DNA of 64,000 nt, taken from Bugula neritina. Taxonomy: Eukaryota > Animalia > Bryozoa. The translations under genes were made by a program, and so were the position numbers. The notes under the pieces are model-generated. The model did not search any database, was not told where the DNA came from, and saw only the letters and a list, made by a program, of their open reading frames with translations. Positions 31,853 to 45,182 of the stretch are shown here, in pieces (the first letter of the stretch is position 1; each line of letters starts with the position of its first letter). Location: NCBI GenBank assembly GCA_964035545.1, contig OZ037770.1, positions 8,500,973 through 8,564,972 on the forward strand, in the 5' to 3' direction.

Positions 31853-32266
31853 CATTTCATCAATAAGTTCCTGAGTTAATGCCTCTCTGGAAGACATAGA
31901 ACTGTCAAATATATAGTTCACGATCACCGTTTTATCAATGAGTACCTGAGTCAATGCTCCTCCGGAAGATATAGAACCATCAATTAATATAGAGGAGCAT
32001 GGGGCAGAGAGAGCTTTTAACAACACCTTGTAAATACTTTAAATAATAAGTTATTTTAAATAATCCAACCGAGTTCTGACTTTTTTTCTCATTTTGCTTG
32101 TGCCTACTTATTATAGCCAGTAATTACACTAAATTCCACAAAGTATTTTTATGTCTGTGACATGTAATAAATAAATAAAATCAATTAATCATCAGGTGCC
32201 GGTCACACATGCACGCACGCACATGCACGCACGCACGCACGCACACACATATATGTATATCTCAAT

Positions 32267-32311
32267 ATGTGTACAGCAGCTGTTTCGGGGTTTGTCCCCT
32301 CATCAGCACAG
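32267..32311 (-). ncRNA. Minimal type I hammerhead ribozyme in a ~270-bp PLE-terminus/retrozyme-like unit (~32258-32527)
   Basis: Minus strand: tgtg-CTGATGA-gggg-acaaa-cccc-GAAA-cag-ctg-ctg-TA-caca. The unit is flanked by simple repeats on both sides. Confidence 0.85.
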
Positions 32312-32525
32312 AACAGGGTACCATGGCCAACACTTTCGCTATAGTAGAAACTTATAGTTTTACTAAAGCATGTTTAAAAGGTGTGCAAACCCAAGCCAGA
32401 GTGCTCAAGTGACTCTAGGGGTCACCTAGGAATCACGAGCCTTGCTAAATGCTAGCAGCTTAAGTTTATGACCATGGTTAAAGTGCTCGATCACTTAATG
32501 TCATTGCAGAGCATTGAATGGGAAC

Positions 32526-33224: not shown

Positions 33225-36200
33225 CTAACCAAATAGGCACCTGCAAAGTAAATACTAAGCTTAGAATAAAATACAAAATAAGCACAACGTGTTGCTATAA
33301 AATTACACTTCATAGACTTTATAAATAAGAACAATGTGTAATTGATGTTTACCTAGCGTCGTCAAGGTGACAGCCTCTGATGATGTCACTTCCTGAAAAG
33401 ATACCCGCCCTGCCACACATCGAAGGATTGTAGCTACAACACAGTATAATCATTATATTAGCCACATGCATCTACATATTATTAACTTGTTTAATAACTT
33501 TGCAAAGTGTAGTTACGGACTTGAAGCCCTCTGTTACCATGTTTACCGGCATACAGCATTATTAGCTTGAGGACTCCACTTACTTATCGCTGTCTGGGTG
33601 GCAACTGTAGTCTGGTTTCTTCAGTGCTGTTTGCACACATCCAGGGGCATCAGGGTGACAGCCCGGAGCGCTGCATCTAGCAAGGTCGAACCTGCATGCA
33701 ACACACATTTCCTTTTGTATGACATTTCTTGGTTGAATTAAGATAGAGCCTAGCAAGTTTGATATCTATTAATTAGCCGTTTCTTTGCATTACTTTTAAA
33801 ACTAGAACAGTGATTTTAGATTTTGCAATTTAAAAAAGTGAAAATTTCCATATTTTTAATTTAAAATAAGGTTGGTGACTTGGCGTATGAAAATACTAAC
33901 AAGTACATAACATTATTATTGTATTTCAGCAGCAAACTCCTGTATCAGTCTTATGGAAAAAAGAGAAGATGCATTCATTTTAATATATCATAGAGTGTAG
34001 AGTCTCATCATCATTCTAAACTGACATATTCTATACATTATATCGTAATATTACGCATCAGCCCTATTAAAATGGAGAAGATAAATATTCTTTTAATCTA
34101 GAGTAGAATCTCCTCACATTGCATAATTCTCATGAAATACTGGCACAGTTTCAATTTAGACCTACTTCTCACTGTTTGGATCACAACTATAGGAGCTGCC
34201 GGTGGTCACTGCTGACTTATCTGACTGTACACAATCAGTGTCATCGGGGTGACAATCCTTTCTTCCAGTTTTACTACTTCCTTTTCCACCACATTTTGCG
34301 GAATCGTAACTGAAGGATATAAAATCGTGATGTCTTATTACCAGTTCGGAAAACACTCAGTGTGATTTTCTATAAAATTTCTTTTGCTAGGCATTGTGAA
34401 GCATCTAAAGAATGTTTTATTAATGCTGCTTGGATTGAAACAAAATGCACTTTATTTCTTGTCTAAATTTGTAAAAAATAGATAACATGTAGCAATATAT
34501 AACTGTTCAAAAAGAGTGCTTCGATTTTCCCAATACTGTGGCCCATTGGTAAAACTAAAAACTTGGTTATTCTGTTGCACATATCATTACTATTACAGGT
34601 CTTAGCTATTTTAGTTAACTAATTTATGTGCTTACAATAGTCTATATTTATAAAAGGAAACTTAATTAGTATATAATATTATATAAGCAGTAGTGTTAGC
34701 AAATTTTGATAAAATAGTATGATTTCTATAATATATTTTTCTTCAACTGCAATTTTTTCAAAGCAATTTTTAGTAATAAGAACTGAATTTGAAAGATAAG
34801 AAAACTGGTAAATCTTTCAAACTTACTTGGCGCTGTCTGGATGACAGCTATAGTCAGGTTTCTTGACTTCTGTTTGAACACATCCAGGGGCATCAGGGTG
34901 ACAGCCCGGCGCGCTGCATCTAGCAAGGTCGAATCTACGAGTAGGCAATTAATGAGCATGTATAATGCTAATAATCATTAGATGCAATGAAGACTATATG
35001 GTATTATAATAGCATTACTGACCATAAAATCTAAGTGAAGGAACTCTATAGTTTAGAGACAGCCATGACAAAGTAGCTTGGAATGAATAAAGGAACAGAA
35101 CAATTTGCTTGCTGTACCATTCAAAAACTTTAATTTACGAACAGTTATTATACTGAGTGAAGTAAAGCCATGTGCCATTTATGCTAAACATTATAGGCCT
35201 GCAAACCTCATAGTACTTTTTTGCTGAGCTAAGCTAAGCTTATAGATTAGAAATGACTACTTTGGTCAGTAAATGTATATATTGTATGAATAACAAATGT
35301 ATTAAGTTTGCTGTGGAGTTGTCTATTCGCGTGTGCTCGTGTATTGGATCGCAACTCTCGTAAACCTCTTTTATTTGGAGATTATGCTATATTATATAAA
35401 GTATATTATATATATCTCTCAATCTGTGTACAGCGGCTGTTTCGGGGTTTGACCTCTCATATATATATGAATAAGCCACAGCAACAAAGAAGGCTGATGG
35501 GCGGCGGACGCAACAACACACCGACAACACTGAGTCACCAACAGCACACAAATCTAGTTAGACAGTTGGAGATCGCCATCAACACTGGTGTCATCCACAA
35601 GCACATGCTGAATGTGCCACTCATAGAGCCAAACATTCGTGTCATACATCAGCTACTCCAGCTCTGTCAGACCTACCAGAACAGTGCGGAATCACTTGGC
35701 CAGGTGCAGCGGCGATTTGGTCACAACTCGGTGCAGGCGGAACAGGCAAACAGAAACCTGAACAGCATCAGTGCTCAGATGAAGAATCTGCAGATGCCGT
35801 ATGTCAAGCAAGTTAACCACGAGATGAACAAGCAGCAGTACGTTGGTGGCCCCGGGTCGGTGTTGCGAGGATCATCTCTCTCCGACAACATGTCTGGCCT
35901 GTCACTTACCAACAACTTGTTACCAAACAATCCCGGCCCTGTCACTTCCGCCTCTTCGCAGTCCAGGCTCGGTATCTGGACGGACAAGGCGCCAGGCTCA
36001 TCTAGACAAAGTGGCGTATTTGACAACAATCCCTGGTCATCAGCTGGTGGCTCAGGGGCTTGGGCTAACATGAGTCCTAGTGGCCAATACTTGGACAACC
36101 CAGAATCTCATTCTCTGAATCTTAATGTCACACAATCTAGCCACGCTACCAGCGCTGCATCTAGTTTTGACATCTCAGAGTTTGTGCCCGGAGTACCATG

Positions 36201-36615
36201 GCTGGGAGCCAACTCTCAGAAGGTGGAGGATGACCCCAATATTACTCCAGACAGCGTAGCCAGATCTATTTCAGTCAGCACCACTGCCTCACTCAATCCC
36301 ACAGGTCGCAACAGCACAGATCTTAGCTGGGGGAGCGGCTCCAAGAGTTCCTGGCCAGGCCAGAACCTGGTATCTACATCAGGTGGTGACATGTGGAAGG
36401 CTGGCAATACCCGACCCCCTCCAGAGTTTGGCAAGAACATGAATCGTAGCATGTCTATGCCTCAAGGACCCTCAGAGAAGTCTGCCTTCAGTCCAGTTGG
36501 CTCCAGCTGGGATAACCAGCAGGCTCTGCTGTCCAGTGTGAATGTCCCTTGGCTGCTGCTGCGCACTGTTCCAGCTCTTGGGGACAAATCCCGAAACAGC
36601 TGCTGTCCACAGATT

Positions 36616-36656
<41 letters not shown>

Positions 36657-39600
36657 ATATATATATATATATAACAGTAGTGGGAAATTCTTGTTATAAT
36701 CAGCTGCATGGAACCTATATTTTGACATAACGCAAATATTATGGTTTCTTAAATTGTTGTTTACTAATAACCAGCCCATAATTCTTCAGGTTGTGCCTTG
36801 AAATAGTCTGCTCACAGTAACCAATATAATGCTTATATATAACAAGATAACTTTTGTAATGTTACGAAATAGGATGTTTACAGATATTATAACTTGTAGT
36901 ACAATCACACACAATCACAATGTCATTAACCTCAAATTAGCCTAACCACTAGCTGCTAGTAGTCTACCTAATGCTTCTTTAATCCTACCCCAAAATAGTA
37001 AATTGTAAAATCATACCTCTTACAACACAATAATGTTTATCAAATGGATTAGTATATAAGACAAAACCATTTTTAGTAGTTGCAATATTGTTAGAGTCAT
37101 GCTGTCAGTTTGGACAGCATCAAATTTATGTAAGACTACTAAAGAGTAGCATTATTTGAAAGACTGTGCAAAGCCACAGCATTAACATAACAGTAGACTA
37201 GGAGAGAGAGAAAAGAGGTAATGAACATCTATTTACAATTATATATCGTTATTACATTTTTATGTTATAAAGTTTTTAATAATATGGGCTGTAGTTGCAT
37301 GCTATGTTGAATCATTATTTCATGCTGCTATCTACAATTTATGATATACATTGCTAGTGCTTTTACATACATACTTATTATATTACGTACATTTTGTTTG
37401 CCTTATGCCTTATGTTGTATCATTATTATTTTAGTTTTTACGGTCAGTGTTTGGTCAGTATTTGGTGACTCAAATAAACTCTGATCACGTCTAAAACCCT
37501 CCCTATTCCTAGTCAGGCTGTATAAGCTAGAGTGTCACTCTAAAGCAAGAGTCATAGCAAAGAGTGTCATTCTATAGTAAAAACTCTTTCTCAAGTCCGG
37601 GAGTAAAAACTCTTACTCAAGTCCGGGAGAAAAAAGCTCCATCTCAAGTCCAACAAAAGAAGTCGACAAACGTAAGACGACCACAAAGAGAACCTCACTT
37701 CTACCCACCTCAACTATATAAACATTACTAACATTTATCAGGATTATTCTCAACTACTCTCAACTACATACAAAGGTGACCTGGAATCAGCAGATTGGTG
37801 AGAGATTACCATATAACCCGCACCTTCACATATAAGTGACATAATTATAAAGAAAATAGTTGAATTGAAAGTTATTAGAACAGTTAGGCTTGCATGCAGT
37901 TTTATTTTTTGAAGTATTGTAATTATAGAAACTCCATTTGATAGACATTGTGTCAAAGCCCCATAAAATCAATTAGGATCTCCCTGTTTCTGATTGGGCA
38001 GTTGGGTGCAATCCCTGTGCTGGCATCAGCTGTTTGTTTGCATTAGCTGTTGGCTAGTGATAGTTCTTGACAAACTAGTTCAAACTAGTTTTCCTACTGA
38101 ATTTAGGTTATAAAATAGCTGTAGTAAGTAAATGCATGCTTTTCACTAACTGTCTCTATTACTAACACAGCAACAATGAATGATGACACATCCACATGTA
38201 GTAATAGCATTAGGATTAGCAGCCGAGTCAAAACCCTATCTACAAAGGGAAAACAATTAGAGGTAGAAAAAAGGTTTAAATCTGTCACAAGTGCAATTAA
38301 AAGGTTTAGAAGTAGGCATGCAGCAACAGACAATCATGATAATGAATTTTGGGATGACATACAACGAATTATGTTAGATGCAGATGCTGACTTAGCAATT
38401 CTAAAGTCATTAGCTCCAAGTCATCCTCACCTTGAGGACTTAACACAGCAAATTAACAGTATACATGAACAATGTAAGGGCGAAAGCCATTCAGTACATG
38501 CTAGCAGTAAACACACATCAAAAGCAAGCTCATTCATCTCAGCCAAGACAAAATTGCAAGTTGCACAATTAGAAATTGAAATGGAAGCCATGCAAAGACA
38601 GGCTGAGCTAGAAAGGCAGTTAGCCAATGTCCAGTTGGAATTAAGTAAAAGTAAGCTGTTAGAAAAACAGAAACAACTGAGAATAAGGCAGGAAATAATA
38701 GAGGAACATGATGTAGATGTTAGAGATGAGCTAGCAGAGTATTTAGATAATTGCCAACCAATAGTGAATCAGGAAAGCAATAGTGAAGTTATTTTTAGTA
38801 GGCCAGTAGAAGTTTTGCAAAGCAACCAACCACAGCAAATAGGCAGCATGCAAAACAATGAATCACAGCATTCTACATGCAGTAATGAATACCTGGCCAC
38901 ATGCTTAACAAAAGCAATACAAGCCAACAATGTGCCGAAGCCACCAATATTTAAGGGAAATCCCTTAGACTTTATAGATTGGGAATATGCCATAGAGAGT
39001 TACATCAAGGATAAAATGATAGGTGATGGTGGTAAAATGTATGTCTTGAAACAGCATGTTGATGGACCTGCTAGAGAAGCAATTAGTGGCCTATGCAGTT
39101 TACATACACTAGCAGCATACCAAAAGGCCAGAATAATTTTGAAAGAAAGATTTGGGTCAGAATTCACAGTTGCTAATGAATTTCGAAAGAAAATTAATGC
39201 TTGGCCCAAAATGAAACCACATGAACATAAGCAGATACAATCATTTTCTGACTTCCTCACACATTGCGAAATAGCAGCAAAAGATATTAAAGAGTTGGAA
39301 ATTTTAAATGATTGCGAAAAGAATCTTGAGCTCATGTCCAAGCTGCCAGATAACATGATAAACAGATGGAAGCGGGAGGTAACCACACATAGGAAAAATC
39401 ACAGGAGTTACCCCAGTTTTAGTCAGTTTGTAAAGTTTGTACAAACAGAAGCAGAAATCCTAAATGATCCAATCACTTCATCTTTGTCAGGTTCAAGGGT
39501 CATAGACTCACATAAGCCTCAAAAGCACAACAACAAGGGCATTAGCTTTGCTACTAGCATAGAAAAGCATTCTCCTGATGTTAAAAGTACAGAAAATCAC

Positions 39601-42600
39601 AAAGCTAAACTATGCCTCTACTGCAATTACAGTAACCATAGCACACATGAGTGTAGAAAACTGGCTAGCATACCAGTTGATCAAAAACAACAGTTCATTA
39701 CTAGTAAAAGATTATGCTTTGGTTGCTTGAGAATAGGTCACATGACAAAAGAATGCAGAAATAGAGCTACTTGTAAAATATGCCAAAAAAGGCATCCTAC
39801 TGTAACACATAGAAGCAATCAGCCAGCTACACAAGCTAACAACAGTAATACCAAAGTAGAAACAGTGCAGGTAAATGAAGTAGCAAGTAGCAACAACCCA
39901 GAGCAAGTAACAGCTAACAGCAACAATACAGTGGCTAAAACAAATGGCTTGTGCTCAATGGTTGTGCCTATATACCTAGCAACTGTAGATAACCCTAATG
40001 AGGAAGTGCTAACTTATGCACTCTTAGATAGCATGTCAGATACCACATTTGTAACTAACCAAGTTGTTAGTAAGCTAAAAACAGCTACAAGCAAACCAGT
40101 TTCTCTTAAACTAACAACAATGACAGCTGACAACTTGGAAATGAAGTGTAAGGTGTACAATAACTTGACCATTAGAGGACTGAACATGCATGAGCAGATA
40201 CAAGTAGGAAAGACTTACAGTAGGGACAGCATTCCAATTAACAAGCAGCACATACCCACACCAGAAATTGCCAATAGATGGCCACACCTTAAATGCATTG
40301 CAGGTGAAATACCTCAAAGTTTAGATATAGAGATAGGAATGCTTATAGGGTATGACAACTCCAGAGCTTTAGTGCCACTTGAAACTAAAATAGGCCCTGC
40401 AATCAATGATCCCTTTGCTCTGAGAACACCTCTAGGATGGTGTATTGTAGGCAATAGTGGTAAGCATGAAACAAACTCATTTCCCACATGCAATAGGGCT
40501 ATGGCTCATGAGCAGAACTTGAGTTCAGATATCTTGAATGTCCTACAGCAAGATTATACTGACACAAAGTACATTGGTACTCATAAAATGTCACAGGAAG
40601 ATGCCAAGTTTTTAGATAACATGCGCAACAATATTAAACAAAGAGAAGACAATTATTACAGCATGCCACTGCCGTTTAAAAATGCTAAGCCACAATTACC
40701 AAACAATAGACAATTAGCTGTGCACAGACTTGATACCCTCAAAACTAAAATGCTTAAAGACCAGAAATATCGAACAGATTACGTGGCATTCATGACAGAC
40801 ATAATAAACAATGGCGATGCAGAATTGGTACCTACAACTTGTGAGGCAAGCAATCATCAGTGGTACATTCCCCACTTTGGCGTGTACCATCCCAAAAAGA
40901 ACAAGATTAGAGTAGTTTTTGACTGCGCAGCAAAATTTAAGAACACAAGTCTCAATGATCACTTGATACAAGGACCAGACTTTATGAACAACCTAGTAGG
41001 AGTATTGCATAGATTCAGAAAAGGGCAAATAGCTGTAATGTGTGATATACAAAAAATGTTTCACATGTTCAAAGTACATGAGTCAGATAGAGACTACCTT
41101 AGATTTCTCTGGTTTAAAGACGAGACTATGACTGACATTGTTGAGTACCGCATGACAGTTCACTTATTTGGGGCTAAATCATCTCCTGCTTGTGCGACTT
41201 ACGGCTTAAGAACATTGGCTAGAGATCACGGGGACTCTGGTACTGACAGTGACAAACAGGCAGTGAACTTTATTGAAAATGACTTTTATGTAGATGACGG
41301 ACTAATGAGCCTAGACTCACACGAACAAATAGTCAGTGTAATCAAGAGTGCAATTAATATATGTGCCAAGGGAAATGTAAGACTCCATAAGTTTGTATCC
41401 AATGACCAAGCAGTTCTAGCCACAATACCTGAATCTGAACATGCTGAAACAATGAAAGATTTAAACTTAAACACAGATATGCCAGTAGAACGTGTGCTAG
41501 GTGTTCATTGGTGCATAAAAAATGATGAATTTCAGTTCAAAGCTAGCATGAAAGAGAAACCACATACTAGAAGAGGCGTTTTGTCTACAATAGCCTCGGT
41601 TTTTGATCCCTTAGGGTTCCTCTCACCAGTTATTCTAATTGGAAATAACATTTTGCAAGAAATGTGCAAAGACAAAGCTGATTGGGATGATGCACTAAAA
41701 CCAGAACTAGAAAACAGTTGGGTAACATGGCAAAGAGAATTAGCAGAACTGCCTCAAATAAAAATTCCAAGATGCTTGAAACCTAAAAGCCTAAGTACTA
41801 TCAGACTAACAGAGCTACATCACTTTTGTGATGCCAGTAACAATGGTTTGGGTCAATGCACTTATCTGAGACTAGTTGATGTAAATGACAACATACACTG
41901 CACATTGCTTTCTGCAAAATCTAGGGTTGCATCAATAAAGCCTATAACAATGCCAAGAGCAGAGTTAATGGCAGCTGTACTATCCTCAAAAATGTCCACT
42001 GTAGTAACCACAGAATTAGCAATGCCTATAACAAATGAATATTTCTGGACTGATTCTAAAGTAGTCTTGGGCTACATACACAACACAACTAAGAAATTTC
42101 AACCATTTGTAGCAAACAGGGTACAACAAATTCTATCCAAAAGCAAAGCAGCACAATGGAATTACATCAACACAAGCATAAATCCAGCAGATATAGCATC
42201 CAGAGGTGCTAGTATCAAAAAGCTACTCAGTACAGACTGGTTCCAAGGACCAAAATTTTTATGGCAGCCAGATTTATCACATATGTTGAATACAGACAGT
42301 AACTATGAGATAGATTCCTCCGACCCAGAGGTCAAATTATGTTTACAAACCAACACAGAGCCTCAATCTAAGTGCTCATTAGAGCAACACCTAAGCAGAT
42401 TCTCAGACCTAAAAAATGCTATCAAAGCAGTAAGTGCAGCCAAAAGATTGGTAAAGCATAAAGGTAGCATAACTCCCAGACTCACAATTGATGACTTGAC
42501 AGATGCTAAACATCTAATAATGCAGTGGGTACAAAAAGAGTCATTTTCAGATGAATATTGCAGGCTAAGTAAAGACAAATGTGTAAGTAAAGATAGTAAA

Positions 42601-45182
42601 CTAGCAAAGCTAGATCCATTTCTAGACAAACATGGCTTGATACGTGTAGGAGGACGACTCCGAGATTCACAGTTGAACTATAATGAAAAGCACCCAGTAA
42701 TGTTACCAAGCAACTCACATGTAACCAAACTTGTGATTAAACAGTGCCATGAGAAGGTTGCACATCAAGGAAAGAATTTGACAATTAGTGAAATTAAGTC
42801 TACAGGCTATTACATTATAGGAATCTCAAGAGTAGTAAGCTCTTACATTCACCAATGCATAACATGTAGAAAACAAAGACATGCTCCAATGACCCAAAAG
42901 ATGGCAGACTTGCCAGTAGAAAGAGTTGAACCAGCTCCACCATTTACCTATGTAGGATGTGACGTGTTTGGACCATTTATTGTAAAGGATAGGAGAGCAG
43001 AATTAAAGAAATACGGTCTAATATTTACATGCATGGCCTCACGGGCAATTCACTTAGAAATATTAGATGACATGACTACAGATGCTTTCATAAATGCACT
43101 GCGGTGCCTCATTGCTATTAGGGGACCTATCAGACAACTTAGATCAGACTGTGGCACAAATTTTGTTGGCGCATTTAAAGAACTCAAGTCAAACCAAACA
43201 AGAATCCAGTCTTTTGCAAGGGAAAACGATTTAGACTTTGTTACAAATGTACCGAGTGCCAGCCATATGGGTGGTGTATGGGAGAGACAAATACGAAGTG
43301 TTAGAAATGTGCTAAACTCCATGTTAGATATGCATAAAACCAGGCTAGACTCAACAACATTGAGAACATTTTTTTATGAAGCAATGGCCATAGTAAATGG
43401 TAGACCTCTTAACACACTAGATGATGGTAATACACCACTAACACCAAATCAACTCTTGACAATGAAATCAAAGCATGTACCACCGCCACCAGGACAATTT
43501 GACCAAAATGATATGTACTCCAATAAAAGATGGAGACAAGTTCAAAGCCTAGCTAACTCGTTCTGGACAAAATGGAAAACACAGTATTTACACAATCTTC
43601 AGGGAAGGCAAAAGTGGCATAAGCCGCAATCAAATATTCGCAAAGGTGACATAGTACTTGTCAAAAATGAAAATACACATAGGAACGAATGGCCCATAGC
43701 TAGAGTGATAGAAACACATAAAACTAGAGATGACTTAATTCGTAAGGTAAAGGTGCAACTAGCAACTACAGAGTTGAACAGTAAAGGTGTGAGACTAGCT
43801 CCACCCACATACTTAGATAGGCCTATCCACAAATTAATTTACCTATTTACCCCATAACCTTTGCATGCATACCTATATTAGTATTTTAGCTTAGTATTTT
43901 AAATGCATAATAATATAATTGTTAATTCCCTCTAAGTGAATAGAGAGAAATTAAAGGGGGGAGTGTAATGTTACGAAATAGGATGTTTACAGATATTATA
44001 ACTTGTAGTACAATCACACACAATCACAATGTCATTAACCTCAAATTAGCCTAACCACTAGCTGCTAGTAGTCTACCTAATGCTTCTTTAATCCTACCCC
44101 AAAATAGTAAATTGTAAAATCATACCTCCTACAACACAATAATGTTTATCAAATGGATTAGTATATAAGACAAAACCATTTTTAGTAGTTGCAATATTGT
44201 TAGAGTCATGCTGTCAGTTTGGACAGCATCAAATTTATGTAAGACTACTAAAGAGTAGCATTATTTGAAAGACTGTGCAAAGCCACAGCATTAACATAAC
44301 AGTAGACTAGGAGAGAGAGAAAAGAGGTAATGAACATCTATTTACAATTATATATCGTTATTACATTTTTATGTTATAAAGTTTTTAATAATATGGGCTG
44401 TAGTTGCATGCTATGTTGAATCATTATTTCATGCTGCTATCTACAATTTATGATATACATTGCTAGTGCTTTTACATACATACTTATTATATTACGTACA
44501 TTTTGTTTGCCTTATGCCTTATGTTGTATCATTATTATTTTAGTTTTTACGGTCAGTGTTTGGTCAGTATTTGGTGACTCAAATAAACTCTGATCACGTC
44601 TAAAACCCTCCCTATTCCTAGTCAGGCTGTATAAGCTAGAGTGTCACTCTAAAGCAAGAGTCATAGCAAAGAGTGTCATTCTATAACTTTCTTTGCCACT
44701 GAATGTACCATGAGAAGTTAAAAGGAACATGCACATTCCAAAATCATTAAAGTGTTTAACAAGTTAATCACAAACTTTTTTATTTAGAGTTTAGTCTGTG
44801 GACAACCATTATCATGTGAGCTTGCTACTCACACATATAAAGTCTACTCTGAAGAATTATCTTTTCATGTGGCAGAAGTGTGGCCAGTATATGCTGATTT
44901 AATGACATTTAACAAAAACAAAGCCTATAATAGTAGTTTATGATAGGACAACATATGTGTACACTCATAAATGCAAATAATTATGTTCATGCTAGTATTA
45001 AGGGTAACAGCCTAAGTGAAGATTTACAAGCTTAAGTTTTCAACATTATATCATGCAATGACTTGACACAACAATACATGTACTTACATGGGACTCTCTG
45101 GAACACAGCTGTATGTAGGAGAACCTGTACAATGTGTTACCATGGCAACAAGGATCAACAATTCAACAATTATTCCTGCCAT
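33225..45182 (-). CDS. Secreted cysteine-rich modular peptide/protein of unrecognised family (exons 45182-45088, [36714-36673 + ~35380-35306, tentative and disrupted], 34934-34827, 34309-34166, 33691-33584, 33433-33353, 33240-33225)
   Basis: Exon 1 MAGIIVELLILVAMVTHCTG-SPTYSCVPESP has a signal peptide. Symmetric phase-2 exons encode FDLARCSAPGCHPDAPGCV...YSCHPDS, YDSAKC...DCHPDDTDCV...YSCDPNS and YNPSMC...GCHLDDAR. Ends CLFG*. Canonical GT-AG sites. Confidence 0.7.
35415..35460 (-). mobile_element. Truncated PLE-type terminus (partial hammerhead), inverted, left flank of the TNRC6 fragment
   Basis: Minus strand ATGA-gagg-tcaaa-cccc-GAAA-cagccgctg-TA-cacagattgaga then (AT). Homologous to 32258-32305. 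Confidence 0.85.
35467..36579 (+). pseudogene. TNRC6: Intronless retrocopy fragment of TNRC6/GW182 (Q-rich/M region, CIM-1, PAM2, M2, first strand of the RRM); ORF still open
   Basis: LVRQLEIAINTGVI...MLNVPL...IHQLLQL (M-domain-like); SQSRLGIW (CIM-1-like); EFVPGVPW..KVEDDPNITPDSV (TNRC6 PAM2); RPPP; scattered GW/SW motifs; WLLLR (RRM start). No introns over 1.1 kb. GC-rich relative to the flanks. Confidence 0.8.
36580..36620 (+). mobile_element. Truncated PLE-type terminus (partial hammerhead), right flank of the TNRC6 fragment
   Basis: ggggacaaatccc-GAAA-cagctgctg-TC-cacagattgagat then (AT)n to 36672. Confidence 0.85.
36855..44685 (+). mobile_element. Full-length BEL/Pao LTR retrotransposon
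   Basis: 722-bp LTRs (36855-37576, 43964-44685), 5-bp TSD ACTTT, polypurine tract aaaggggggag before the 3' LTR, single intact polyprotein. Confidence 0.96.
38176..43857 (+). CDS. BEL/Pao Gag-Pol polyprotein, 1893 aa
   Basis: Three zinc knuckles (CLYC..H..C, CFGC...H...C, CKIC..HP..H), protease ALLDSMSD, RT WYIPH/RVVFDC/YVDDG, RNase H HHFCDAS/FWTDS/NPADIASRG, integrase DVFGP/SDCGTNF/GGVWER. Confidence 0.96.
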   Translation: MNDDTSTCSNSIRISSRVKTLSTKGKQLEVEKRFKSVTSAIKRFRSRHAATDNHDNEFWDDIQRIMLDADADLAILKSLAPSHPHLEDLTQQINSIHEQCKGESHSVHASSKHTSKASSFISAKTKLQVAQLEIEMEAMQRQAELERQLANVQLELSKSKLLEKQKQLRIRQEIIEEHDVDVRDELAEYLDNCQPIVNQESNSEVIFSRPVEVLQSNQPQQIGSMQNNESQHSTCSNEYLATCLTKAIQANNVPKPPIFKGNPLDFIDWEYAIESYIKDKMIGDGGKMYVLKQHVDGPAREAISGLCSLHTLAAYQKARIILKERFGSEFTVANEFRKKINAWPKMKPHEHKQIQSFSDFLTHCEIAAKDIKELEILNDCEKNLELMSKLPDNMINRWKREVTTHRKNHRSYPSFSQFVKFVQTEAEILNDPITSSLSGSRVIDSHKPQKHNNKGISFATSIEKHSPDVKSTENHKAKLCLYCNYSNHSTHECRKLASIPVDQKQQFITSKRLCFGCLRIGHMTKECRNRATCKICQKRHPTVTHRSNQPATQANNSNTKVETVQVNEVASSNNPEQVTANSNNTVAKTNGLCSMVVPIYLATVDNPNEEVLTYALLDSMSDTTFVTNQVVSKLKTATSKPVSLKLTTMTADNLEMKCKVYNNLTIRGLNMHEQIQVGKTYSRDSIPINKQHIPTPEIANRWPHLKCIAGEIPQSLDIEIGMLIGYDNSRALVPLETKIGPAINDPFALRTPLGWCIVGNSGKHETNSFPTCNRAMAHEQNLSSDILNVLQQDYTDTKYIGTHKMSQEDAKFLDNMRNNIKQREDNYYSMPLPFKNAKPQLPNNRQLAVHRLDTLKTKMLKDQKYRTDYVAFMTDIINNGDAELVPTTCEASNHQWYIPHFGVYHPKKNKIRVVFDCAAKFKNTSLNDHLIQGPDFMNNLVGVLHRFRKGQIAVMCDIQKMFHMFKVHESDRDYLRFLWFKDETMTDIVEYRMTVHLFGAKSSPACATYGLRTLARDHGDSGTDSDKQAVNFIENDFYVDDGLMSLDSHEQIVSVIKSAINICAKGNVRLHKFVSNDQAVLATIPESEHAETMKDLNLNTDMPVERVLGVHWCIKNDEFQFKASMKEKPHTRRGVLSTIASVFDPLGFLSPVILIGNNILQEMCKDKADWDDALKPELENSWVTWQRELAELPQIKIPRCLKPKSLSTIRLTELHHFCDASNNGLGQCTYLRLVDVNDNIHCTLLSAKSRVASIKPITMPRAELMAAVLSSKMSTVVTTELAMPITNEYFWTDSKVVLGYIHNTTKKFQPFVANRVQQILSKSKAAQWNYINTSINPADIASRGASIKKLLSTDWFQGPKFLWQPDLSHMLNTDSNYEIDSSDPEVKLCLQTNTEPQSKCSLEQHLSRFSDLKNAIKAVSAAKRLVKHKGSITPRLTIDDLTDAKHLIMQWVQKESFSDEYCRLSKDKCVSKDSKLAKLDPFLDKHGLIRVGGRLRDSQLNYNEKHPVMLPSNSHVTKLVIKQCHEKVAHQGKNLTISEIKSTGYYIIGISRVVSSYIHQCITCRKQRHAPMTQKMADLPVERVEPAPPFTYVGCDVFGPFIVKDRRAELKKYGLIFTCMASRAIHLEILDDMTTDAFINALRCLIAIRGPIRQLRSDCGTNFVGAFKELKSNQTRIQSFARENDLDFVTNVPSASHMGGVWERQIRSVRNVLNSMLDMHKTRLDSTTLRTFFYEAMAIVNGRPLNTLDDGNTPLTPNQLLTMKSKHVPPPPGQFDQNDMYSNKRWRQVQSLANSFWTKWKTQYLHNLQGRQKWHKPQSNIRKGDIVLVKNENTHRNEWPIARVIETHKTRDDLIRKVKVQLATTELNSKGVRLAPPTYLDRPIHKLIYLFTP

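Follow-up and report, generated by a model that had tools for sequence, protein, structure and literature searches.

A partial spliced copy of a GW182/TNRC6 gene fused to a retrozyme tail in a (TA)n microsatellite of the bryozoan Bugula neritina

We analysed a 64,000-nucleotide stretch of the genome of the bryozoan Bugula neritina (contig OZ037770.1, positions 8,500,973 to 8,564,972; hereafter the window), in which an intronless fragment of a GW182/TNRC6 gene lies between two inverted ends of a hammerhead-bearing repeat. The locus (35407-36672) comprises, in this order, degenerate TA repeats, a 44-nt repeat end on the minus strand, a TA spacer of 7-9 bp, a 1115-bp insert, a 40-nt repeat end on the plus strand and a (TA)n tract. 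The inverted arms (35407-35454 and 36582-36629) extend over 48 nt with 90% complementarity, and both terminate in CACAGATTGAGA, followed by TA repeats. A 29-nt motif representing this terminus occurs three times in the window, against zero occurrences in 100 shuffles. Hammerhead-derived inverted ends had been proposed for this insert in an initial annotation of the window, and the 48-nt inverted repeat bears this out, with both ends being tails of a retrozyme (see below) that end in TA.

When the insert (35467-36581) was searched against the 216-Mb genome to which the window belongs, the matches were the insert itself and seven collinear pieces at G000:C1:20169151-20172561, with 95-100% identity. 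Local alignment revealed that each piece of the parent stops at a GT and that the next one resumes after an AG, with six introns of 114-1264 nt exactly absent from the copy. The parent is located on contig C1 and the copy on contig C6. Both outer ends of the copy are internal to exons: the parent continues upstream (...GSSR/MNKPQQ..., the slash marking the limit of the copy) and downstream into an RNA-recognition motif (RRM; ...VPALG/DGNLLKTLC...), and the 3' end of the copy falls 12 codons into the parental RRM exon. In addition, RNA-like contigs from sequencing run X2 join the parental exons identically at the four junctions that they span. Parental exons were joined locally only for counting differences; the queries were either the window reference or individual exons.

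No poly(A) was detected at the 3' end of the copy, which is exonic and fused to the retrozyme tail. With respect to the hallmarks of LINE-1-type (long interspersed nuclear element 1) retrocopies, the copy hence lacks the 3' poly(A), and a target-site duplication is unreadable within the TA repeats. Taken together, these data confirm that 35467-36581 is a genuine retrocopy of a spliced host mRNA. The initial annotation had described an intronless TNRC6 fragment without poly(A) and had suggested that its parent be located and its exon junctions examined; the parental locus on C1, the six GT-AG introns missing from the copy and its exon-internal ends agree with that description, and the fragment is not a single exon.

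The copy covers the middle region of GW182/TNRC6 and the region binding the poly(A)-binding protein (PABP), up to the start of the RRM; missing from it are the GW repeats of the N-terminus, the greater part of the RRM and the C-terminus. Pfam matches in the insert fell below the cut-off (M_domain, E 0.003; TNRC6-PABC_bdg, E 0.009), no match to Ago_hook was obtained, and the retrocopy protein returned no match among solved structures. The parental RRM exon matched the RRM of Drosophila GW182 (PDB 2WBR) with an E-value of 7.6e-19 and RRM_1 with an E-value of 3.6e-6, and the upstream parental exons are visibly rich in GW/WG. Judged by its sequence, the parent presents the GW repeats, the middle/PABP-binding region and the C-terminal GW182-type RRM that define a GW182/TNRC6 gene.

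The presence of the insert in sequencing runs was assessed on contigs, which can show presence and cannot prove absence. In run X1, whose sample is possibly that of the assembly itself, a contig covers 286 bases of the locus with zero differences, running from the unique left flank through the left arm into the insert, of which it includes the first 69 nt. Separate contigs in this run carry the insert-specific variants, at a word depth of ~55-58x beside ~118-124x for parent-specific contigs, and the insert carries ~11 differences from every parental allele seen. These observations bear on the possibility that reads derived from GW182 cDNA or mRNA were mis-joined into a repeat-rich TA region during assembly. 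Such an artefact would find room in the right flank, where TA tracts break contigs and positions 36654-36850 lack contig cover in any run; in view of the bridging contig and the insert-specific variants, we regard it as extremely unlikely. Runs X14 and X17 contain the parent as long unbranched, intron-containing contigs and yielded no insert-specific pieces. Together with the depth in X1, this suggests that the insertion is hemizygous and polymorphic. Contigs from X14 and X17 that match the left flank (35250-35392) with ~5% divergence continue into (TA)n(CA)n or (GT)n; they may represent a very different allele, possibly the empty site, or a paralogue.

The insert and the parental allele in the assembly present 23 differences, 11 synonymous and 12 non-synonymous. 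About 11 changes in the 1115 nt of the insert are absent from all parental alleles seen, and eight of these are non-synonymous, which is close to the neutral expectation. An open frame of 371 codons begins at an internal Met of the parent, but the low divergence means that its openness provides no evidence of function. The retrocopy is young, probably polymorphic and apparently neutrally evolving, and represents a rare, probably non-functional by-product.

The sequence to which the retrocopy is fused belongs to a family of short repeats. The terminus motif had 572 matches in the genome and none in a reversed control, and in 30 fetched loci it corresponded to the end of a 271-nt non-coding unit without an open reading frame (ORF). 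The unit is often arranged in head-to-tail arrays with a spacing of 271 bp (range 261-274), and every non-tandem copy in these 30 loci is followed by a (TA)n or TA-rich tract. The 3' end of the unit reads as a type I hammerhead, composed of helix I (UCUGUG/CACAGA), CUGAUGAG, a 4-bp helix II (GGGG/UCCC or GGGG/CCCC), GAAAC, a short helix III (CAG/CUG) with the palindrome CAGCUG, and a GUC or GUA cleavage site, with the GUC site located 12 nt before the end of the unit. The copy at 32258-32311 in the window likewise presents CUGAUGAG, the 4-bp helix II, GAAAC and a GUA site, and the element to which it belongs (32260-32520) is flanked by (CACG)n/(CA)n/TA and (TA)n tracts.

On direct inspection the CUGANGA box, the GAAA box, the GUH site and the type I helix order are hence all recognizable in the putative ribozyme. 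Rfam hammerhead models returned no match in the whole window at the gathering score, nor in the two retrozyme stretches at E<=10, where only microsatellite noise was obtained. Hammerhead variants with a short helix III are known to escape such models (PMC4209133). In its predicted ribozyme type, size and arrangement the element fits the class of animal retrozymes lacking long terminal repeats (non-LTR retrozymes; PMC7229834). The coordinates of the features at the locus, and of the near full-length copy, are listed in Table 1.

Table 1. Features of the GW182/TNRC6 retrocopy locus in window coordinates; unit positions refer to the 271-nt retrozyme.
Feature	Position	Strand	Remarks
Left arm, an old, decayed solo retrozyme tail	35417..35460	-	unit ~226/228-271; 88.6% identity over 228-271
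TA spacer and 5' junction	35459..35467	.	TAT common to the TA tract and the parental exon
Partial processed GW182/TNRC6 retrocopy	35467..36581	+	seven exon pieces, six GT-AG introns removed
Right arm, young retrozyme tail	36580..36619	+	unit 232-271, 100% identity; presumed start of cDNA synthesis
(TA)n target tract 3' of the right tail	36620..36672	.	(TA)n or a TA-rich tract follows every non-tandem retrozyme copy in the 30 fetched loci
Near full-length retrozyme copy of the older subfamily	32260..32520	-	261 bp, 91.6% identity over unit 12-271; hammerhead core 32258-32311

Retrozyme copies are 5'-truncated at many positions, often within the hammerhead. In 12 of the ~55 independent insertions that were sampled, the truncation falls at positions 223-239 of the unit, within CUGAUGAG or helix II, so that a solo tail of 33-49 nt remains in the TA tract. 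The two arms flanking the GW182 copy are solo-type tails of this hot spot. Neither arm retains the CUGAUGA box of the ribozyme core, and the arms are therefore not ribozymes and cannot cleave. The initial annotation had matched both to the hammerhead unit at 32258-32311; their membership in the same retrozyme family stands, but they do not match it alike, the right arm belonging to a young subfamily and the left arm to an older one. Two identical 38-nt solo tails are also found in two TA tracts at another locus (L046; G000:C3:18729800-18733200; 1100-2400), where they flank an uninterrupted (GT)n tract of ~750 bp and where a stray 16-nt piece of the 5' half of the ribozyme, GCTGATGAGGGGACAA, is embedded in TA. 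This locus was considered as a composite element and rejected, given that it consists of two solo tails 959 bp apart around (GT)n.

The right junction of the retrocopy involves a GG overlap between the parent (...CTCTTGG/AGATGG) and the unit (...GAGG/GGACAAATC), and the tail lies in the same sense as the mRNA. The tail abuts the exon directly, without intervening TA. Had a solo tail been present beforehand, TA would be expected at its inner end, as in the tails at L046, so the fusion is best explained by a single polymerase run. Furthermore, the retrozyme RNA that served as template would have been uncut at its GUC site, because the 28 nt located 5' of this site were copied. The same junction speaks against the chance landing of an ordinary retrocopy, made by the reverse transcriptase (RT) of a LINE or LTR element, between two retrozyme tails that were already there. 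Young RT genes of this kind are very numerous in the genome (2192 candidates in a genome search with RVT_1), an intact BEL/Pao element lies 183 bp away, and LTR-mediated retroposition is known in animals (PMC5131818). Neither end of the copy, however, carries poly(A), (CAAA)n or LTR sequence, its 3' end is exonic, and the exon meets the truncated tail without intervening TA, which makes such a coincidence very unlikely.

The architecture found at the GW182 copy is not unique in this genome. At a second locus (L027; G000:C1:32549103-32549367; 1208-1570), a (TA)n tract is followed by a 227-bp cargo, a 38-nt retrozyme tail and another (TA)n tract. The cargo is 97% identical to C3:13296999-13297227 (L062, 499-727), a unique non-coding stretch embedded in unique DNA on both sides, and the overlap at its junction is of 2-5 nt. 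This locus is hence a second chimera, built like the GW182 copy. A probable third one is L058 (598-1229), in which dispersed-repeat sequence is joined to the retrozyme tail and for which a relative without the tail was found (L063, 3925-4490). A further candidate, L066 (1167-1462), was rejected as a chimera and assigned to a distinct ~260-nt repeat family with the same tail. This family has at least 12 copies at 84-94% identity, in which the tail stands behind a decayed ribozyme core, with GACAGGGAC replacing GAUGAGGGGAC. The presence of the same tail in this family makes it a module common to several families, and it looks like a shared mobilisation module.

The inverted pair of termini had been put forward in the initial annotation as a searchable signature of such copies. 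The signature yielded very little: two partial searches with hot-spot patterns, from which full-length and TA-flanked copies were excluded and which sample only part of the sequence space, returned only the GW182 locus, L027 and L066. With two to three chimeras among 572 tail motifs and ~57 loci inspected, the template-jump route looks real but rare. The recurrence at L027 also bears on whether the locus could result from a break in (TA)n patched by microhomology-mediated end joining, with capture of GW182 and retrozyme cDNA and without target-primed synthesis. Overlaps of 2-3 nt at both junctions, a host fragment with both ends internal to exons and the instability of long TA tracts in this genome would all be compatible with such a repair event. 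Random capture, however, would fix neither the ends of the tail nor the order of the parts, and here the outer end of the tail is the canonical ...GATTGAGA with (TA)n after it, which hundreds of ordinary insertions also show, its inner end falls within the usual truncation zone of the family, and L027 repeats both order and orientation. We hence consider break repair distinctly improbable.

The retrozyme is non-autonomous, and the initial annotation had attributed the ends of the insert to a Penelope-like element (PLE). None of the ~57 loci carrying a retrozyme tail contained a PLE ORF; this includes L047, which was tried as a PLE for its two direct tails 6 kb apart. A genome search with the GIY-YIG profile of Pfam (PF01541) returned SLX1 only. 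As for the RVT_1 candidates, the top 150 were rejected as PLEs, given that their scores were too high and too uniform. In the top-scoring group, L061 (1684-4554; G000:C1:20244600-20249800) was identified as an APE-RT LINE; its ORF encodes 956 aa and its tail is (CAAA)n. Some two dozen matches share its score, many of them with an open frame of 961 aa.

A PLE family was located with a degenerate DNA pattern for a PLE RT motif, which had 36 matches versus none in the control and was used only as a lead, with the ORF verified afterwards. One member (L065, 1688-3850; G000:C3:16068800-16073700) has an intact 720-aa ORF with the motifs DKG, FDVVSLFT, AMGSP and YIDD and with a GIY-YIG domain containing two Cys between its GIY and YIG halves, a hallmark of PLEs (PMC8557442). 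RVT_1 was its sole Pfam match (41 bits), PF26215 not being among the profiles used, and nearly all of the homologues listed for it carry PF00078 and PF26215, most of them PF28514 and one PF01541. A relative in the same family (P0001) encodes 809 aa. By these sequence features the family, which includes L064, L065 and L028, can be classed as a young canonical PLE of the endonuclease-containing (EN+) type.

At least 93 matches to this PLE family were obtained, mostly 5'-truncated towards a common 3' end, of which 369 termini were found genome-wide. Among the first 100 termini listed, 31 inverted pairs have their tails outward and 4 have them inward. Many of the tails-out pairs lie ~170 bp apart. 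In L028 (1184-1412) a palindromic head-to-head junction is situated just upstream of the hammerhead-like motif of the PLE (CUGAAGA...GAAA, ~90 nt from the end of the element), and this palindromic centre suggests snap-back synthesis. In each of the three PLE copies examined a (TA)n tract forms the end, preceded in two of them by an extension of 33-35 nt. (TA)n ends, 5' truncation and a frequent stop at the 5' edge of their own hammerhead were seen in both the retrozyme and the PLE, but their inverted pairs differ in structure and their tails have no sequence in common. PLEs are known to favour (TA)n and to form tails and inverted copies (PMC8557442), and they have been proposed as the mobilisers of animal retrozymes (PMC7229834; bioRxiv 10.64898/2026.07.22.740005). 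On the circumstantial evidence of the (TA)n target, the truncation behaviour and this literature, a PLE appears to be the best candidate for the RT serving the retrozyme; we make this assignment by inference, since the PLE terminus is unrelated in sequence to the retrozyme tail.

The left arm tells a different story from the right one. Its markers, AAACCCC and GUA, are those of the older subfamily and are common to the copy at 32260-32520. It carries at least four private changes in 42 nt, versus none in the 40 nt of the right arm, and a genome search with these 42 nt, allowing up to 3 mismatches, returned only the arm itself. This contrast in age and sequence indicates that the two arms come neither from one event nor from one template, and the left arm appears to be an older, decayed solo tail that was independently inserted into the same microsatellite. 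A second priming event, which the initial annotation had invoked for the inverted left end, is at odds with these differences.

The reading that the arms and the cargo nevertheless arose together, both cut strands of (TA)n being primed on retrozyme or PLE RNA, draws on the tails-out topology that is a standard product of the PLE family in this genome (31 versus 4, and the palindrome in L028), on the truncation of the two arms at nearly the same position of the unit (~226-228 and 232), and on the frequency with which PLE insertions carry an inverted 5'-truncated copy (PMC8557442). Against it, the left arm is only 88.6% identical to the unit, compared to 100% for the right arm, and the ~1% private divergence of the retrocopy predicts ~0.4 changes in the left arm, where at least four are seen together with the older markers. 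Moreover, the lack of any genomic relative within 3 mismatches leaves no source RNA of that sequence on record, and truncation in this zone is common anyway. Retrozyme tails themselves present no excess of tails-out pairs, with 3 tails-out and 2 tails-in pairs among the first 100 matches listed; in the pairs examined, long TA tracts lie between the two tails. Such equally rare pairs with long TA separators are what repeated insertions into one microsatellite would be expected to produce. A single event generating both arms is hence unlikely.

The evidence is best accommodated if the locus is a chimeric, partial processed retrocopy that arose by target-primed reverse transcription, in a single event at a (TA)n microsatellite, which we consider probable. 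The RT serving the retrozyme, most probably the RT/GIY-YIG protein of (TA)n-inserting PLEs, would nick the TA tract, prime on the 3' end of the retrozyme RNA and copy ~40 nt up to hammerhead helix II, the habitual stop of the family. It would then jump, via the GG overlap, onto the spliced GW182/TNRC6 mRNA inside the exon in which the RRM starts, extend over 1.1 kb in the direction of the mRNA 5' end before halting within an exon, and the end of the cDNA would be joined to the upstream TA tract through the TAT overlap. Priming at (TA)n and a subsequent template jump would be expected to yield a sense fusion with a 2-nt overlap, no poly(A) and a tail starting at (TA)n, as observed. The initial annotation had envisaged this same sequence of (TA)n priming, copying of ~40 nt and a jump onto TNRC6 mRNA in the sense orientation, and on this point the 2-nt overlap, the lack of poly(A) and the recurrence at L027 are in its favour.

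Several observations weigh against this interpretation. Repair by end joining, too, typically leaves overlaps of 2-3 nt. No PLE carrying the retrozyme terminus was found, and the PLE family examined shares only the hammerhead core with the tail. The Penelope-type termini and the autonomous PLE bearing them that had been anticipated in the initial annotation hence do not correspond to what is seen: the termini belong to the non-autonomous 271-nt retrozyme, and the young EN+ PLE has a different 3' end. The structure of inverted pairs also differs between the two elements (31 tails-out and 4 tails-in pairs for the PLE, 3 and 2 for the retrozyme), and the retrozyme and the PLE may not integrate identically. 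Regarding alternative enzymes, the tail was inspected in only one copy of one LINE family. Finally, none of the contig pieces listed extends across the right junction, a further 72 pieces not being listed.

Two other features adjoin the locus. An apparently intact BEL/Pao LTR retrotransposon (36855-44685) starts 183 bp to the right of the TA tract of the retrocopy. Its 722-bp LTRs are 99.86% identical, and its 1893-aa ORF matches Peptidase_A17, an integrase zinc finger, DUF5641 and, weakly, RVT_1. It is separate from the retrocopy and does not enclose it. Just to the left of the locus, a 116-nt direct repeat (33578-33693 and 34821-34936) presents 89% identity between its two copies, 1243 bp apart.

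There is no in vitro system for PLEs or retrozymes (PMC8557442), and as a result the process by which these elements are converted into DNA in animals is not yet understood. Under the interpretation of a target-primed event with a template jump, the locus may be regarded as a natural experiment on this process. It would fix the start of cDNA synthesis at the ...GATTGAGA/(TA)n end, on a template uncleaved at the ribozyme site, place the preferred exit from the template at hammerhead helix II, and reveal an enzyme able, once it has switched template, to copy over 1 kb of an unrelated spliced mRNA. It would also extend the known routes of host-gene retrocopying in animals whose LINEs lack poly(A). 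The practical yield is small, with few chimeras. A bolder proposition, which we view as very improbable, is that the 40-nt tail alone suffices for the entry of a (TA)n-specific PLE RT that habitually leaves its template at the hammerhead, and that this constitutes a general PLE/retrozyme route to spliced host retrocopies. If this were true, any abundant RNA could be appended, and new non-autonomous families sharing only the tail could arise; moreover, the ATG-initiated frame would encode a fragment of the GW182 silencing domain without Argonaute hooks, which could interfere with microRNA (miRNA) silencing.

Bipartite chimeric retrocopies (U6-L1, mRNA-Alu) generated by LINE-1 template switching were reportedly described by Buzdin and colleagues in 2002-2003. 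Chimeric retrocopies of LINE-1 template-switching origin have been reviewed (PMC5470649, PMC5408686), and the GW182 locus resembles them in several respects. In both cases the 3' part derives from the 3' end of a mobile-element RNA, which provides the priming site, a jump has added an unrelated cellular RNA as the 5' part, the two parts lie in the same sense and the cargo is 5'-truncated. Unlike LINE-1 chimeras, the copy described here has a 40-nt retrozyme tail without poly(A), a (TA)n target and a jump into the middle of an mRNA, and the likely enzyme would be a PLE RT instead of L1 ORF2p. The literature consulted, with incomplete coverage, contained no description of a retrozyme tail to which a template jump had joined part of a spliced mRNA.

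LTR-mediated retroposition (PMC5131818) provides a second parallel, in which host mRNA is joined to a retroelement by template switching in animals whose LINEs lack poly(A), but no LTR sequence flanks the GW182 copy. With regard to the element itself, two reports on animal non-LTR retrozymes (PMC7229834; bioRxiv 10.64898/2026.07.22.740005) describe the same type I hammerhead, tandem arrangement, non-coding nature and coexistence with PLEs; as far as consulted, they make no mention of host mRNA capture, of a (TA)n target or of a truncation hot spot in the ribozyme, all of which set the Bugula neritina element apart.

A further precedent comes from Adineta vaga, in which Penelope elements mobilise host genes in trans and unrelated non-coding sequences have also been captured between terminal repeats (PMC3846280). 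As in that case, the host sequence described here has been relocated and is bounded by cis-acting terminal sequences of PLE type. The PLE-linked copies of host genes reported so far kept their introns (PMC3846280), and in Adineta vaga they are accompanied by whole pseudo-LTRs and target-site duplications; the GW182 copy, in contrast, is spliced and partial, and is joined to a retrozyme tail of only 40 nt.

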